Assembly: GCA_002104905.1 (NCBI GenBank)
Contig: MCFE01000406.1
Coordinates: forward strand, 1-64,000
Source: Basidiobolus meristosporus CBS 931.73
Lineage: Eukaryota > Fungi > Basidiobolomycota
Reading direction: 5' to 3'
DNA length: 64,000 nt
Below, in pieces: positions 1,440 to 54,074 of the stretch. A model generated the notes under the pieces. It worked only from the letters and a program-made list of their open reading frames with translations. It did no database searches and was not told where the DNA came from. Each line of letters starts with the position of its first letter. Positions within the stretch are counted from its first letter, which is position 1. The position numbers were made by a program, and so were the translations under genes.

Positions 1440-2880
1440 TAAAGCTGTTTAAAAGCCCCAAACTTTGCATACATTATCCTGGAACCTCACCCAGTGAATT
1501 GATAGCATTTTTTTGATTAAATGCCACAAAAATATATAGGCTAAATTTCAACTAAATAAGCCAACGATGAATACCACCTCTTGAATAATAAAAACAGATT
1601 AATTGAATGTAAAAGTAGTACCTATACTTTTACATAGTCTTGGAAAAACAAACGCGTAAAATACGTTTAGGAAGGTCTTAAGAACATGTGTGCAAAGTTT
1701 GGGGTTGTTTGGACAACTTATCAATTTTTCATGTTCTGGGTACCTGATGTTTGTTGTAAAAATTCGTAATTGCACCTAACTATTCACCTAACTTAGTCAC
1801 TTAGATCATTACCTTCAAACCCTAGAGAATACTGACCAAATTCCTTGTCGAGATTTACTTAGAATATTTACCCAGAACATGAATATTCTCAAAGTTGCCC
1901 AAACAGCCCCAAACTTTGCACACATGTTCTTGGGACCTTCCTAAGCCTATTCTATGTGTTTGTTATGCCAAGACCATGTAAAAGTATAAATACTACTTTT
2001 ACATTCAATAAATCATTAAGTGAAAACCACATAATATACTTGTTCTCCCAATCACTTCCAATATCTCCAAAACTCTTGCAACAATATTTTGGTGAATTAT
2101 TCAATTGGTAAATCCTAACAAGGAATTTGGGCAGAATTCTCTGATTTTTAGACCATGATCTAGGTGACTAAGTTAAGAGAATATTTAGGTGAAATACAAA
2201 ATTTACTACAGGGACCACATGCAAATCTCTATATCCTGAGGACATGAAGTATGCAAGAGTAATGAGGCACTATCAAATTAAAATGTATTATTCTCAGTAA
2301 CAACTGTATAGCAAGTAAAATGGGAATCTGGAATTGGTTTGGGATTATTACAAAGTTTGAGTGAAACTCAAATCTAATCTTGAATCCAAAGCTTTAGTGA
2401 AAGCAATTATGTATGGGAAGTTTGTTGAATTGGTGTGATAAGTGGAGTGAGGCTCTTGTTATCATCAAGCAACATGAGTATGACTAGACTGTGTGGGATC
2501 TTACAAGACTTACCAAGTGCTTAAGAGCATCATTTCCATTGTTGAGGTTATTGTAAGTACTCAGTTAACACTTGAACCATTCATATGCCTTAAGATCTAT
2601 TTAGCTTATCGCTAAATTATGAATTATTTACTTATAATTTGGTTCGTAAGCTAATTCTTGGAATTAGTGAAGGCCTGGATATTATCAAAATTTTCAAACT
2701 CGCCCAAAAGCCCCCAAACTTTCCACACAACTTCTTGGGACCTTTCTTAAAGCATTCTTATCATCGGCTTCACTAAGTTCTCCTAGAAGTGTGTATATTT
2801 TATTTGAACTCAATAAAACAAGTGAATATCATGTAGTTCTTCTAGTTCTCCAAATCACTTCCAATACTGCCTAGAATCTT
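1440..2880. repeat. Degenerate AT-rich repeat cluster with nested inverted copies (foldback/MITE- or satellite-like)
   Basis: 1602-1742 is the reverse complement of 1869-2009, and 1756-1858 is the reverse complement of 2108-2206 (both roughly 80-85% identical by eye). The core motif GCCCCAAACTTTGCACACA recurs in diverged form near 1455, 1907 and 2710. Confidence 0.8.
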
Positions 2881-42818: not shown

Positions 42819-43291
42819 TTATTCCTGCTTAGCTTGCTTCTCCTCAAGCTCCTGCTTGCGCTTTAACTTCTGCATATTTCTAAAGCGGCGCATGTAACTA
42901 AAACAAAAATGAATCAGAGAGTTCCCTTCCGGTGAACAAGGCATCCCGCACAGAATCACCGAATAAGTGCTGCAGTCACGGGTCTTTGATAAAAGTTGCA
43001 CTTACTCGTCATATTGGCACTTTTCATAACCATGACGCTCGTCCTCACACTTCCAGGGAAGGTACCAAGAGGCTTCACGGCATTTGTTCAAAGGAATAAG
43101 AAGATGTGCACAGCTATCACGGAAAGCCAAAGGAATGCGCGCATCTGCCATTTCTTTTTGGGTGGCAATCATTGGTGGGGGTGCCTCTAGAGTGAAATCT
43201 TTGAAGAGGATCGGTGAAGTAGGCAGGTCAGATCACATTAGGGATTGGGTTATATCTTGGGGATGCACTAACCTTCAGCTTCAGTAGCCAT
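42819..43291 (-). CDS. NDUFB7: Mitochondrial complex I accessory subunit NDUFB7 (B18/NB8M), 2 introns
   Basis: Spliced ...PPPMIATQKEMADARIPLAFRDSCAHLLIPLNKCREASWYLPWKCEDERHGYEKCQYDDYMRR..., the twin CX9C B18 signature. The main exon is absent from the ORF track. Confidence 0.95.
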
Positions 43292-43701
43292 GTTTATATA
43301 AGTACTTCACAAGCAACTGACGACAAACAGGTGAGGAAGTATATATGGTTTAGAAACTTTCGGGCCTGAGGCATGAGAATCTAGTATGGAATTGGCTACA
43401 TGTTGGGGTCTTTTGGGGTAAAGGCCCCCTTCATTTTTCCAGATGCAAGAAATCTATATGCGGGGTAATAAAACGTGTATTAAACAAACGGTTTAATGCG
43501 ATCATAACTTCATGGCTAGATACTTCATCCCAATACTAAATTTGTCGATTTATTTGAACACAGCTTTATGTTAGATTTAAATAGACCATTATCAAGGACA
43601 GGACGGTTAAGGATTATGGAGACTATTATCTAGGGACACCGTAGCAGCTTGCTCAAGGGGTTATATAGTAAATATCTACCGAGCATCGAGTGTATTCCAC
43701 G

Positions 43702-45489
43702 TTATAGAATGTAGATAATTCGCTTGTTAGTAATAAACATACGCAATGTAAAGTCAATTATCAGCCACTTGAACTTAGAGTGACGAGGACATCCAATTCC
43801 TAAAATGTATCGAGTATTATATATCACCATTACGGGTACAATAGGTATTAGAGATGTGTACCTAGCCAATTCATTTTTCATTAAAAACGCTATGGCAACG
43901 GTAGATACAGAGGCTGACAGTGCCAGGACAGCAAGGATTCGATTGGCATTTTTGCCAAGATAATTGTGACGGGGGTCTCGCTTTTGGGCAGGAGGAAGCG
44001 GTTTACTGAGTATCTTGCGAACATGCTCTACATTTGGTTGATCGTCAATTCCGAGGTTTTCCCAATTCTTGCTATAAGTGTTGACTACAGATCTAAATAG
44101 AGCTACGACGTAAGTATTTGGCCTCAGTTGACGCGAAAGGGCCTTACCGCTTGGGTAGCTCAAGTCCAGCAAGCGCTTGAAGTTTACTTGGTGGATATTT
44201 CGCTAATAAATCCAATGTTTTTGATAAAAGTGCATCTACGTTTGCTCCTTGTGGGAATTTGGAGAGGAATGTATGGACCATCGCGTATTCACATTCACAA
44301 TCCAGAAGCTCATCTTTACGGCTTAACACAACCTTGAGGTGACAGTTAGAGTCAAAGAACAGATCAGCCAACAGCTTAGTCACTCACACTAGCAGCAAAA
44401 TACACCGGCGCTAATGGGTTCACCGAAAGAAAGAAATCGAACAAACGTGTAACTTTGGAAAAATCATTCAAGTCGTGGCTGCACCATGTCAGAACCCAGC
44501 TGAGACAGAAATATGGTGGTGTCTCCGATCTATTATTCACGCTGTTAAGAGGGCTTCAAGCATGTTTGGCTAAATGATTCACTTTACTTTAGTAAGAAAT
44601 TGCTGACTTGCGAATCTTCTTGCGCCAAAATGGTTTGCATCAAGGCTAGTTGGCTCATCACCGGCTCCAAGGAATCAGACATTGCATCCGTGTAGTTGAG
44701 TTAAGAATCTTGTCTAATATGGGAAATAGCAACGAGGAAGATTATACGAAACGAAAGGATATCTCAGGAAAAATAGTGCCATATTCTGGGCCGCTTCAGC
44801 AGCCTTATCTGGTCCCAAGACTAGAAGCAGACAGGTACATATGTCATGAAATCCCTAAAAGCACTGCAAATTAGAACAACAACAGCATAAATGACCAGTA
44901 TAATATCGATTGACATGCCTGGTAATAAGATAGTTCAGGATTGTTCCTTAGGACCTGGGTTATTACCGAGGTAAGTTCTTTTCGTTTTTCAGCTCGCCAC
45001 GTCTGTCGAGTATCCGCTAGATAATATTTATCAGCTGAAAATCTCCAACAATTAACAGAAAAAGTAATACCTGTGGGCAATTTTCCTAAAGATCTTTTGA
45101 CATCTAAGTCTACTTGGGATTCATCTTTATGGGGCATACCTAAGAAGCATACAACGTTACAAAATTTCCTTTTGGTAACTAATCTTCCAACGAATTACTT
45201 ATTGTAGAATTTATCTGTGTTTTATCGCAGTGAAGAATCAGAGGCCTTGATCGAGAAACCGTTATTGACGAATCGCGTATGAAACAGGCTCACATAAGAA
45301 CCAGTACCAAGATAATCTTCGAAGCCCATCATTTAGTAAACCTGGCCCAGTTGTCGCCAGCATCTTTAAGCTAGCAATATCTTTGTTGCGAATAGCATCG
45401 TTTATTAGTCCTACTCTCAGCTGTCGTTTATCTCGAGAGTTCTTGGAAGTATTGGTCCGATGGAGGGTTTTTTTCCTATGCTTAACCAT
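43702..45489 (-). CDS. TBC-domain Rab GTPase-activating protein, TBC1D20/Gyp8-like, with C-terminal TM; ~8 introns including one AT-AC and one GC-AG
   Basis: GLLNDGLRRLSWPLIL, QVDLDVKRS (Arg finger), LSYYQGFHDIC (Gln finger), FLRDAM, PYFCLSWVLTWCSHD...VTRLFDFFL, ECEYAMVHTFLSKFP, hydrophobic tail. Confidence 0.92.
44690..44762 (-). other. U12-type (minor spliceosome) AT-AC intron, 73 nt
   Basis: 5' site ATATCCTTT, branch site TTCTTAAC (44707-44700) about 10 nt from a CAC 3' end. Removal gives LFFL-R-DAM in frame; retention causes a frameshift and an in-frame TAG. Confidence 0.92.
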
Positions 45490-46321
45490 TTGTAACTTCA
45501 ATATGATGGCACAAGTTGCTTTTGGTAAGTCAAACTGTATTCTTCATTGACAACGTTCAGGCAAGAATGCATTATGGTGGAGGAATTGCATATGATCTTC
45601 CATATTGCGCATAAATTAATTCGAATATCGTAAGCGGGAATGCTTGGCGTTAACCACGAAATTATCCAACTTAATCACCAACCGCCACCTCATCAATGTT
45701 CATCGATATCTCTGCAGGCCAGGGCTGATTTTAAATTCGATGCAATGAACCAGAGCAGAAACATTGCAAATTTTGTATTACCAAGACCGTTTCCCTGTGG
45801 CAAACGGATCTTGCTAATCACCAATCTCCACTTTCCCAACTTTCGTATATTCGCACAGCGACCATATCCACTCATCACGGCGCATACATATGAGACATGG
45901 GTTTCTTCCAATCCTTACAATGGGTGTCCTATATAAATATACCAGAACATCAGGCCCATCCATGCAGTGCGTGAACTAGTACCTTCTATTTGGTACTCTC
46001 GGGTAACCTAAACTTTAACAGAGTTAATCAATTAGTAAAAGCCTGTCCGGCCATTGGCTGGTGCGCAATACCTTGGAGCTCACCTATGCGAATGAAAATC
46101 CAGGATTCTTCAGAGTACGCCATTGTGAATAGGTTTAATAAGCTTACTATATTAAGCATGAATGGGTGTTCCTGGTACATTTGCCCTCCGAGGTAACACC
46201 GACTTGTTCTATATTTATGAGTAAGCTATAAAAGCCAATTGCCAAACCACTTTTGTTTAAGCTTTATATTGCCCACAAATCTGGTCGCCAGATTGATGGG
46301 AAGAACCACAATTAACCAGCC

Positions 46322-48595
46322 ATGTTTTCCATATTACCCCTATACAAAAGTGAAAAAACCAACGTGCAGAGAACTTGTCAGTTTCCAAGGCCCACCCGAC
46401 GATACACACAGCTCTTACTGATTGGAATTGGAACCTTTTTTGTATACATTGTATTCCGTCTTCTCACACCTCATATTAGCCCCAGCCCGAGCTCCTTAGT
46501 ACACAACTCGGAAGAACCATTAGATCCCAACTGTCCTGGTATCTTTGCCTCCAACAACTCCCATGTTGCTCGATATTCCACCTCTTCAGGTGGCAGTTGC
46601 TCTGCTTTCGAAAATCTTGAACACTACAATCTATCTGAACAACGACGTGAAAAGATCAAAGCTGGCTTTCTTCATGCTTGGAACAACTACGTGGAAAAAG
46701 CAATCGGTTGGGATGAAATATCACCAGTTACGGGAGCACCTAATAATAGGTTACTAGTTACTTATCTAATGACCGTCGAAGCAATATCGACTAACTTATG
46801 TTGAATTTTTTTCCGCACAGGTTCAACGGGTAACGACTAAAATGCTCAACTAACCCTCCCCAACTGGTGCCCAACTGACGCATTGTTTATAGATGGGGGG
46901 CCACACTATTTGATTCTCTGGATACGATGCTAATCATGGGCTTGAGGTCGGAATTCGACCAAGTTATGCAATATGTCAAGGAGGTTGACTTTTCCAAAAG
47001 CGTAAGTAGTCTTTGCTCCGCATGCTTATGGACTGAGATTGATCTTTCCTCCAGAGCGGGGTCAACTTCTTCGAGACCACCATTCGGTATCTAGGGGGGT
47101 TAATTAGTGCTTACGAGTTATCTGGCAACCCGATACTGCTAGACAAAGCTCAACAGTTGGGAGAAAATCTTTTGAAAGCCTTTCACACGAATTCCGGGTA
47201 TCCGTACAACAATGTTGATTTTCAATCGTAAGTGATGTTTAGTAAGATCCTTATCGCTTTGGCAGCTCTAACATAGATTGTCTACTTAGCACGACGGATA
47301 TCCCATTACATAATGGAAGATGCGTATTGGCTGAGATAGGATCATTTCAATTGGAGTTTAGGAAATTAAGTGAGCTAACAAATAACCCGATATTCCTTGA
47401 AAAGGTATGGGGTCCGTTGAATTTCTTATGGGCTTGGCTGATCCACCATTTCTAGAGTCAAAAAGTGATTGATACACTGGATAAGATTGAAAAGCCTTAC
47501 CCTGGGCTGATTCCAGTTAGCCTAGACCTTGATACTGGCAAGGCACTGAAAGGTAATCCTCTGTTCCAGGTGGCAATTTTCTTAATTTTTCCCTTACCAT
47601 TGATGACAATAGATACGATCTCTTTTGGTGCATTGGGCGATAGCTACTATGAGGTAATTTGCCAGTCAATCTCTTTATTGGTGGACGTACCTAATGTAAT
47701 GTGGGATAGTATTTGCTGAAGCAGTATTTGTTGACTGAGAAGTCTGTAGACCAGTATCGGCGAATGTGTAAGTGGCCTTCTAGGCAGCTGAAAGACACAC
47801 CTATTAATCCTTTTATCCTAGATGAGTCCTCAATTGATAGCATGAAAAAATACATGATAGCCGAGGCCCGCGGACAGACCTATTTGTCGGCGTTGAACAG
47901 TCAATCGGTGATTGAGAAGTCCATGGAACACTTGGTGTGTTTGATTTTTTGATTCCTAATGCTTGCTGGTAAAGTTTCGCTAATGGGATGGTGAAACAGA
48001 CTTGCTTTACTCCAGGCCTCCTTGCCTTAGGGGCAAAAACATTGGAACGCCCGGAGGATTTGGAGCTGGCAAAGAAGCTCGTGAAGACATGCTACGATGC
48101 CTATAGAACATCCGAAACTGGCCTCGGTCCAGAAAAAGTCAGATGGCTGGCGGATTCGGATTCGGTGGAACTTCTGAACCCAGATGATGCGAAGAGAGTG
48201 CTGGACCATGGGTTTTATTCGGATATACCCTACTACATACTGCGACCAGGTAATTCTCCTCAAATAGCTCGGGAAACCATTGCGATACTCACCCCTTGTT
48301 GTCCCCAGAAACCATCGAGAGCATCTTTTATCTGTACCGATTCACTGGCGATCGCAAGTATCAAGAGTGGGGGTGGCAGATCTTCACTGCGCTGGAAAAG
48401 GTTTCCCGGACTCAATTCGGTTATTCTGGACTGAACAACGTTCATGACCCCCAATCATTGGATAACAAGATGGAGAGCTTCTTCATGGCGGAGACCATGA
48501 AATACCTCTACCTGCTATTCTCATCACCGGACCTGATTAATCTGGAGAAATATGTATTCTCGACTGAGGCTCACCCATTCAAGATCAACCACTGA
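46322..48595 (+). CDS. MNS1: Class I alpha-1,2-mannosidase (GH47, Mns1-like), type II membrane protein, ~10 introns
   Basis: N-terminal TM, then FLHAWNNY...[100 protein letters not shown]. Confidence 0.95.
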
Positions 48596-50834: not shown

Positions 50835-52659
50835 TCAATTGTTTTTTTGGAGCCTAGCCTTTAATTGCTGCTGGTAAAGACTAGCTGGCTCCACGCGCTT
50901 TCCCATGCTCTCGTACCAACCTTCAGGCTTCTCTCCAAATGCCGCCCGAAGCTTTTCCCCTACCTGGCCCACTGCGAAGTTCTGTGCGGTGGGAGGCTTC
51001 TGAACAATGACACTCCCTTCACAGTTCCAGAGCATGTAGTTTGCACCCGACCATCCATGCCCGCTACCCATGTAGCCACGGTATTGGACAGCAATCGATG
51101 ATTTCACATTGTCAAAGAGCCCTCCAACAGACCAGCGCATGTGAGGCTCTATTCAGAAAACAGATTCAAATAAATCATCAATGCCAATAGATATGGAATC
51201 CATGTAGACGAGGACACTTACCGCTCGTAGCAATGTCCCTTTCGGACTGACAATCATGGAAAACGTTGGGGCCTGTTATTTGAGATCCAACAATAAACGG
51301 ATGTCTGGCATCAGTAGCACGACATTGTTTGTAGAGGATTCGCTCACTTCCTGCTGCAATGTAGTAGGCGTATCGATAACTACCATCAATGGAGGAGACT
51401 GGCTCGCTATAAGTACAGTCTTGCACGGTGACTTGTAGGGATGCTTGGGTTGTAATGAAGTAATCGAAATGACGTCCAGTAACCCCGCGGACCCAACAAT
51501 TCACGCAGCTTTTGACGTGCACAAATCCAAGTGCGTGGTTGTCGTCTGCTAAATAGGTCTCACCATTCTCGAGTTTTTTGGTGACGGTATTATCGTAAGC
51601 AGCAACCCCGTTGAGATATTCTACTCCGACATGCTCGAGTCTCTCTGGGTAGGTGTACTTTGCGATCCAGCCACCACCCCATCTCTGATTTATACTGGTG
51701 GTCAGAGGCGCGTCAAAAGTGATGGTACCGGCGTCGTTGTCGACTTCTTTCACTTTCCTTGTAAAGTAGAGATCGAAAGGCTTCCAGTCATACGAGTTCC
51801 TGTTGTTGGGGTCGTGCCAGGACAGGGTATCCATACCAATTTCATGGATCCAGTCCCAATTACCATAGCGCGCAATGACTATATCATCACCAGCGGCAAA
51901 CTTTCTTGAATCCTTGGTAGTTAACTGAATCTGAGTGGCACCCAAAGGAACATACTTCTGCATGATAGGTGCTTGGCTTCTACGATTCACTACAAATCTG
52001 GCTTTTGTATCGATGGTGAAGGTGTACAAGCGATCCTTGAAAGTCGAAACAACTGTGGTGTTGCCGTTCTTATCACCACGGATGATAATCCCGCTGGCAC
52101 CTATGTTGATGACCTTGTTAACGGTGAAAACACCTGAACGCAGGAACAAGGCGCCCCGATACTTGGTTTTAGGGTCGATTGGGGCAGCTGCGATTTTCTG
52201 GATAGCCTCTTGGATTCTAGCCGTATCATCACCATTGGAAGGGTCTAGAGTCTCTAATGTAGGTATGTCCTCAGGGATATCCTGCTCACCATTGTAATAA
52301 CCAACATAGGAGTAGTCTGGAATAATGTCGCCCTGGTCCGTGAAGGCTTTGTAGTTGATAGCGTTGGTATTAGTATCCACGGTTAGCAAGTTTGTCTGAC
52401 CTGCCGTTCCTGTCGGTTGCAGGGTTGAGTGCGGAACTGGGTACTTCGGTGGGAATATGGCTGAGCACCAGAAAGATTCGGAGCAACGCCAGTGTCCGTA
52501 AGATATGGCCCTTAACATGAATAGGAAGAACAAGACCACTCCCACTTGGCAACATCTCTTGACAATAGGCTTGCTATCGCAGCATTTGAACCAGATGCAG
52601 AATATGTCAGACCAGTGAAATCGTCTTTTGTTATTGATGCCGGAATATTCGTAGGACAT
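50835..52659 (-). CDS. Right-handed beta-helix polysaccharide lyase-like (pectate_lyase_3-like) protein with N-terminal membrane anchor, 1 intron (51149-51221)
   Basis: PDYSYVGYYNG...GDDTARIQEAI...YRGALFLRSGVF...ASGIIIRG; C-terminal ARHPF...GPNVFHDC...EPHMRWSVGGLFDNV...GSGHGWSGANYMLWNC...PASLYQQQL. TM segment VGVVLFFLFMLRAI. Confidence 0.8.
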
Positions 52660-53294
52660 GATGGTATACGTGGGATTAGGGAAGCAACAGAGTGAAAAGA
52701 GCAGTCTTGTGAAGACCTGTTCAAGGAGTAGGTAATGTTGAAAAAAACTGAACTCGTTATTACATTTCGAATTTCCTCGTATCACCTCCCGTTAATGAAT
52801 ATTAGAATTAATATAGATATTTGTAACGTATACTGTAGAGGCACCAATCCACTCTCGAGGCTAAATAAAGATGTGGCCAATATCGGCTGTCACTTTCTAT
52901 TTTCGCCACTCACATGATTGAAGTTGAAGGTGTCATGAGCAATATGTGGGTGCATATTCTTAATAAAGATTTGATGAAGCCATTAGCACAATTATTGCTA
53001 TTTTGTAGGCGTCATCTCCAGCCTCAAAAGAGTGCGTAGCGCAGTATCGCAGAAAAGCCGATGGAAAACTGGCCAATTTCCCTCGTAACTCGGCGTTGAA
53101 TTGAGATGTGTATTTTTTTGCGCAATATAAAGATAAATGAACATCAAACGGTTGGGGAATTGTATGGCTAACAGTAAAACGAATTATTTGCGTGAGGATG
53201 TGGTTATGTTTCCTACTAAAAATGGTTCCTTCGGTTCAACAAAACAAAGTAGAAAGCTGGAGAATGTATAATGGCCAATTATCGACGAGCGGTT

Positions 53295-54074
<780 letters not shown>

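Follow-up and report, generated by a model that had tools for sequence, protein, structure and literature searches.

An AT-AC intron with U12-type signals, and its history across fungi, in the TBC1D20/Gyp8-type RabGAP gene of Basidiobolus meristosporus

Two published catalogues of minor introns covered Basidiobolus meristosporus. Larue & Roy (2023, PMC10639083) counted 249 minor introns in this species (0.554%), the top density among fungi. Olthof et al. (2024, PMC11347168) counted 237 and additionally reported the U11, U12 and U6atac genes together with a putative divergent U4atac. It was also reported that minor introns were biased away from phase 0 and that vesicle-transport genes were over-represented among the minor-intron genes of Rhizophagus (PMC10639083). 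Both catalogues (PMC10639083, PMC11347168) were built from annotated introns. When a first-pass annotation of the DNA analysed here implied that a minor intron in this organism would be a surprise, the implication was unfounded, since the species was the published fungal record-holder for such introns. Another close system was the RabGAP family of human TBC1D20 and yeast Gyp8, represented in the PDB by chains 4HL4 and 4HLQ. In the literature, we found no paper that ties TBC1D20 to minor or U12 introns.

We analysed a 64-kb stretch of the B. meristosporus CBS 931.73 genome (hereafter, the window), in which a RabGAP gene of this family was located on the minus strand. Its exons, which we assembled by hand, and the features of its fifth intron were as follows:

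43775..45489, minus strand: TBC1D20/Gyp8-type RabGAP gene K493DRAFT_266340, 10 coding exons, 1173 nt, 390 aa; ATG at 45489, end of the stop codon at 43775
45489-45308, minus strand: exon 1
45245-45199, minus strand: exon 2
45139-45071, minus strand: exon 3
45016-44919, minus strand: exon 4, whose last codons encode the catalytic YYQ glutamine-finger motif
44854-44763, minus strand: exon 5, starting directly after YYQ and ending at its 3' side in AG, bases 1-2 of an Arg codon
44689-44588, minus strand: exon 6, whose first base G completes the Arg codon and is followed by DAMSDSLEPVMSQ...
44529-44388, minus strand: exon 7
44332-44148, minus strand: exon 8
44092-43862, minus strand: exon 9
43799-43775, minus strand: exon 10
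44690..44762, minus strand: intron 5, U12-type AT-AC, 73 nt (from sequence, an exact RNA joint and orthologues)
44754..44762, minus strand: 5' splice site of intron 5, ATATCCTTT, matching the U12-type consensus RTATCCTTT at 9/9 positions and lying directly at the exon border
44700..44707, minus strand: branch-point sequence of intron 5, TTCTTAAC, matching TCCTTAAC at 7/8 positions
44690..44691, minus strand: terminal AC at the 3' end of intron 5 (from sequence and the RNA joint)

The spliced translation of the gene was 100% identical (390/390 residues) to the protein K493DRAFT_266340 (P0162) of B. meristosporus CBS 931.73, so the AT-AC junction was already present in the public gene model. The Pfam RabGAP-TBC domain PF00566 was precomputed on P0162, a protein identical to our model. 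Searched as single exons, only exon 7 scored against this family, with 20.8 bits, which was below the gathering score by itself. The same exon aligned to residues 200-242 of TBC1D20 (E=1e-12), and the TBC1D20 chains 4HL4 and 4HLQ (E~1e-12) were its only PDB matches at E<=1. Exon 7, used as the query of an exhaustive HMMER search, led to a 388-aa protein of Basidiobolus ranarum, Gyp8 (P0012), and the relatives returned by the protein search were named gyp8 or TBC1D20-like. Similar to human TBC1D20 and yeast Gyp8, the Basidiobolus protein had an arginine finger (VDLDVKR, of the IxxDxxR type, including DVKRS) and a glutamine finger (YYQ, of the YxQ type). A hydrophobic stretch ILAVLALSASVSTVAIAFLM near the C-terminus, read from the translation, may be a membrane anchor. 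Judging from its family membership, the product would be an ER-anchored Rab1 GAP.

Of the nine introns of the gene, seven were of the GT-AG type and short (54-62 nt). Intron 4 (44855-44918, minus strand), which adjoined exon 5 upstream, was a GC-AG intron (CAG/GCATGT...TTTTAG/GG). B. ranarum had GCATGT at the corresponding position, and a public sequencing run (X3, described below) contained a joint from 44853 to 44918 with up to 3 ambiguous letters, compatible with GC-AG at a cut of +1.

Intron 5 was in phase 2, in line with the phase bias reported for minor introns (PMC10639083), and it split the Arg codon of the FFLR/DAM segment (...ALFFL(R) / DAMSDSL...). When it was excised, the reading frame ran CTG AG/G GAT GCA ATG, encoding L R D A M; when it was retained, a stop codon followed 19 codons on. 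The LRDAM motif split by the intron corresponded to the HLRDFM of animal TBC1D20. This HLRDFM-type motif was intact in all 120 of 120 animal protein models, a count that is silent on introns. As criteria for the U12 type we used a TTCCTTRAC-like branch point approximately 8-21 nt from the 3' splice site, a pyrimidine tract not being required. Between the branch-point sequence TTCTTAAC and the 3' junction lay 10 nt (TCAACTACAC), which were not a pyrimidine tract. The branch-point sequence differed from the consensus TCCTTAAC by a single change, C to T, which would still allow pairing with U12 as a G-U wobble. The coordinates and the motifs that the first-pass annotation had given for this intron were exact.

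We then enumerated all in-frame GT-AG, GC-AG and AT-AC pairs over exon 5, intron 5 and exon 6. Among all these junctions, only the AT-AC pair 44762/44690 yielded FLRDAM, upholding the earlier observation that no GT-AG junction was found to restore this motif. The in-frame GT-AG options either removed DAMSDSLE (e.g., 44752/44665) or added intron-derived residues. Every GT-AG or GC-AG alternative that kept the frame lost or altered conserved residues; none restored FLRDAM, and none was used by the RNA contig described below. The chance expectation of the signals themselves was also assessed. The RTATCCTTT 9-mer alone was not significant (2 found vs 1.6 expected in 64 kb). The composite signal, made up of the 5' site, a suitably spaced branch site and AC or AG at the end, was observed 2 times vs a mean of 0.21 in shuffles, and a count of 2 was reached in 9 of 300 shuffles. 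The functional argument, namely the reading frame and the restoration of FLRDAM, was stronger for intron 5 than the chance test of the composite signal.

Transcript evidence came from public sequencing runs, whose assembled contigs rather than raw reads were compared over window positions 43000-47000. No run classed as RNA was found over the gene; runs of any kind comprised X1, X2 and X3. Runs X1 and X2 were genomic and probably the source of the assembly. Run X3 carried the label 'DNA?', itself a guess, and its cDNA nature was read from its coverage pattern. Over this region X3 covered only the exons of three neighbouring genes, the depth between genes was zero, and its contigs skipped all 9 introns of the RabGAP gene. 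Because of this exon-only coverage, with every intron skipped and no intergenic depth, X3 behaved as a transcriptome. One X3 contig (depth 47.6) joined position 44689 to position 44763 with 0 ambiguous letters and with 91 letters on the shorter side. The 73 nt that it skipped had the ends GT..AT on the plus strand, corresponding to AT..AC in the direction of the gene. The junction 44763/44689, for which an RNA check had been proposed, was therefore found as an exact joint. Since X3 came from the genome's own study and may underlie the public annotation, it was independent of the assembly rather than of the gene model.

The fact that this evidence came from assembled contigs, of a run labelled 'DNA?', leaves room for an artefact, such as template switching by reverse transcriptase, mis-assembly or a processed DNA copy. 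This was extremely improbable. There were no repeated letters at the joint (0), yet template switching needs them, and the contig carrying the intron 5 joint had five further joints, all at canonical introns. Moreover, the motif restored by the junction is one that fungi and animals have both conserved, and the gene models of B. ranarum, Gigaspora margarita and Umbelopsis independently used the identical AT-AC junction at FLR/DAM. Finally, the genomic runs X1 and X2 contained no intron 5 joint and held the unspliced form only. Thus, intron 5 was cut out in vivo precisely where predicted, which indicates that minor splicing works in this organism. The first-pass claim of a functional minor spliceosome was accordingly supported, both by this exact RNA splicing and by the published U11, U12, U6atac and 237-249 minor introns.

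Run X3 also contained a joint from 46752 to 46892, the two sides of which were separated by 'CAACG'. It was due to a 9-nt micro-exon, GTTCAACGG, at 46821-46829 on the plus strand, in a glycosyl-hydrolase-47 (alpha-mannosidase) gene. The micro-exon encoded part of R-F-N-G and was located between GT-AG introns 46750-46820 and 46830-46892.

The X3 contigs additionally bore on how completely intron 5 was removed. The binned depths (29.2 and 32.4) matched those expected from contig depth multiplied by the exon fraction (29.1 and 32.7), so no assembled transcript kept the intron. No contig retaining intron 5 was present among the X3 contigs, from which rare forms drop out; for this reason X3 shows the use of the junction rather than the efficiency of splicing. 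The first-pass annotation had suggested that the intron could be a rate-limiting control point for GAP activity. In this form, intron 5 would be a slow, regulated (detained) step on which the level of the Rab1/Rab2 GAP depends, a proposal that is additive to minor splicing and does not exclude it. It is established that minor introns of animals and plants can splice less efficiently and respond to the activity of the minor spliceosome (discussed in PMC10639083), and this intron has been kept for very long in several fungal lineages. On the other hand, the X3 depth fitted zero coverage of intron 5, and no contig retained it, whereas the GT-AG intron 1 (45246-45307) had such a contig: the one at 45217-45336 (depth 19.8) read through it, and the spliced contig had a depth of 13. 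This comparison was weak evidence. The rate-limiting role was pure speculation. In Rhizophagus, Larue & Roy saw no association between minor splicing and proliferation and favoured neutral persistence (PMC10639083). Taken together with the orthologues below, we considered a regulated step unlikely.

The history of the site was followed in orthologous genes, where the state at the codon of FLR/DAM was as follows:

B. ranarum (L002): AT-AC intron at the identical codon and phase; 5' site ATATCCTTT unchanged, branch site TCTTTGAC with 10 nt after it, AC end; intron body unalignable
Gigaspora margarita (L004): AT-AC intron of 93 nt; 5' site ATATCCTTTT, branch site TTCGTGAC (weak) followed by 11 nt
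Umbelopsis sp. PMI_123 (L006): AT-AC intron, 96 nt; ATATCCTTTT, ATCCTTGAC followed by 17 nt
Allomyces macrogynus (L008): GT-AG intron (GTACGC...TTAG) at the identical codon and phase
Cymbomonas, a green alga (L005): intron absent
Coemansia (L007): intron absent
Thoreauomyces, a chytrid (L009): intron absent
Dissophora (L010): intron absent
Rhizopus stolonifer (L011): intron absent

In B. ranarum, Gigaspora and Umbelopsis, the U12 signals were kept and the body of the intron had diverged, the branch site of Gigaspora being weak. Minor introns were described for Mucoromycota (Rhizophagus irregularis and others, PMC10639083), and in the orthologous genes of Gigaspora margarita (Glomeromycotina) and Umbelopsis (Mucoromycotina) an AT-AC intron was found at the same codon and phase as in Basidiobolus. 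These two introns differed from intron 5 in their length and body, and in the weak Gigaspora branch site. The simplest history is that intron 5 is old: a U12 intron was present at this site before the Basidiobolus/Mucoromycota split and was followed by several losses. In the lineage of Allomyces, either a U12-to-U2 conversion took place or the site is older still. U12-to-U2 is the accepted direction of such conversion.

The same comparison bears on the possible regulatory role. The intron was lost in Rhizopus, Dissophora, Coemansia and the chytrid, and it was of the GT-AG type in Allomyces; these outright losses and the Allomyces GT-AG intron argue against an indispensable regulatory role. A more elaborate version, in which a slowly spliced step gated by the minor spliceosome would tune the ER Rab1 GAP and the AT-AC intron would have been kept by selection since before the Basidiobolus/Mucoromycota split, appeared quite unlikely to us. 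The reading that we prefer remained constitutive removal.

Outside the fungi, the green alga Cymbomonas was the one genome in which the site was read. Several other sequences were considered in the comparison. The animal match P0159 was an intron-less transcript contig and was set aside for the comparison of intron positions; the Daphnia fragments were partially spliced transcripts, uninformative at FLR/DAM. The Allomyces protein P0055 did not include the catalytic YYQG segment, and the DNA of L008 (~806-937) encoded PFLHYYQGLHDIC... a short way upstream in a different frame; this record thus had a frameshift or a model error. A further B. ranarum contig (L001), reached via the neighbouring pectate-lyase gene, ended in repeats short of the RabGAP gene. 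In the window, this neighbour was a single long ORF of 535 aa (51178-52785, minus strand), 85% identical to a 'pectate lyase superfamily' protein of B. ranarum. Its further relatives that were found were all bacterial or metagenomic (e.g., Tepidisphaeraceae), with <=37% identity, and from these matches the ORF can be considered a candidate for bacterial gene transfer into Basidiobolus. Additionally, in window positions 1646-2084, stretches of ~160 nt matched several copies, in both orientations, in L001:15200-16160 of B. ranarum with 71-85% identity. These stretches look like a dispersed repeat family common to both Basidiobolus species.

A few animal AT-AC introns use the major (U2-dependent) spliceosome, and it is established that the type of the spliceosome is not decided by the terminal dinucleotides alone. 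Intron 5 might therefore have been removed by the major spliceosome as well. Consistent with this, the Allomyces intron at the identical site was an ordinary GT-AG intron, and no minor snRNA was located within the window: a search with Rfam over the whole 64 kb, at the gathering score and at E<=1, returned no snRNA and no other RNA family (tRNAs in the window were likewise not found). However, U2-type AT-AC introns are without the pair of ATATCCTTT and a TCCTTAAC-like sequence at the right spacing, and intron 5 had both. Both signals were kept in B. ranarum and Umbelopsis, and the 5' site in Gigaspora, with drift elsewhere in the intron. Moreover, a pyrimidine tract was absent before the 3' end of intron 5, and both minor snRNAs and ~240 such introns have been reported from this species. 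Removal by the major spliceosome was thus very unlikely.

Intron 5 was, in our assessment, very likely a genuine U12-dependent (minor-spliceosome) AT-AC intron that is constitutively spliced. The first-pass annotation was hence right to place an intron of this type in a TBC1D20-type RabGAP gene of an early-diverging fungus, as seen from its signals, its RNA joint and its orthologues. From the same observations we infer that the minor rather than the major spliceosome cuts it, with recognition by U11/U12 and catalysis by U4atac/U6atac. The steps proposed here were drawn from established knowledge of minor splicing. Namely, ATATCCTTT at the 5' splice site would base-pair first with U11 and then with U6atac, and U12 would pair with TTCTTAAC so that the branch adenosine, approximately 11-12 nt from the 3' junction, would be bulged. 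Catalysis would proceed with U4atac and U6atac. Constitutive removal of the intron would then restore FLRDAM, a conserved part of the TBC domain.

Like the catalogued U12-type AT-AC introns of B. meristosporus, intron 5 combined ATATCCTTT with a terminal AC, a non-zero phase and, 10 nt from its 3' end, a branch site resembling TCCTTAAC; it differed from them by one departure from the branch-site consensus, compatible with wobble pairing. Since the intron was correctly annotated, it was very probably listed in both catalogues, as one of the ~240-250 minor introns published for this species. A second U12-type intron in the window, of the GT-AG subtype, was located at 53891-53980 on the minus strand, in the P-loop region (GKT/T) of an ARF-family GTPase gene. 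It had GTATCCTTT and ATCCTTAAC, and its branch site was separated from the 3' AG by ~22 nt, a rather long distance. In the B. ranarum gene (L001:8468-9248), the 5' site and TTCCTTAAC were kept and the remainder of the intron differed.

It had been predicted that standard gene predictors would mis-annotate the RabGAP gene. This did not hold for the gene itself, where the model K493DRAFT_266340 was 100% identical to ours and the B. ranarum model was right as well, but it did hold for several other fungal orthologues. The models with errors at the site were P0165, P0166, P0030, P0025, P0015, P0075, P0127 and P0053. In the models of Funneliformis geosporum, Entrophospora sp. and Calcarisporiella thermophila, a read-through peptide LRYPF or LRYPL was found at the site, which is AG/ATATCCTT translated as codons. 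In those of F. caledonium, Endogone, Jimgerdemannia and Radiomyces, residues were missing at the site. These patterns suggest that an AT-AC intron may have gone unrecognised in those genomes and given rise to the errors.

Thus, intron 5 was a real but routine member of a known set. As a discovery it has little value, since minor splicing was published for this species and the public gene model already had the junction; both the kind of intron and the organism were already known. What was new here was the transcript support for this junction and the history of the site across fungi. As a warning for annotation, LRYPF or LRYPL was the tell-tale of an error in orthologue models at the site of intron 5.
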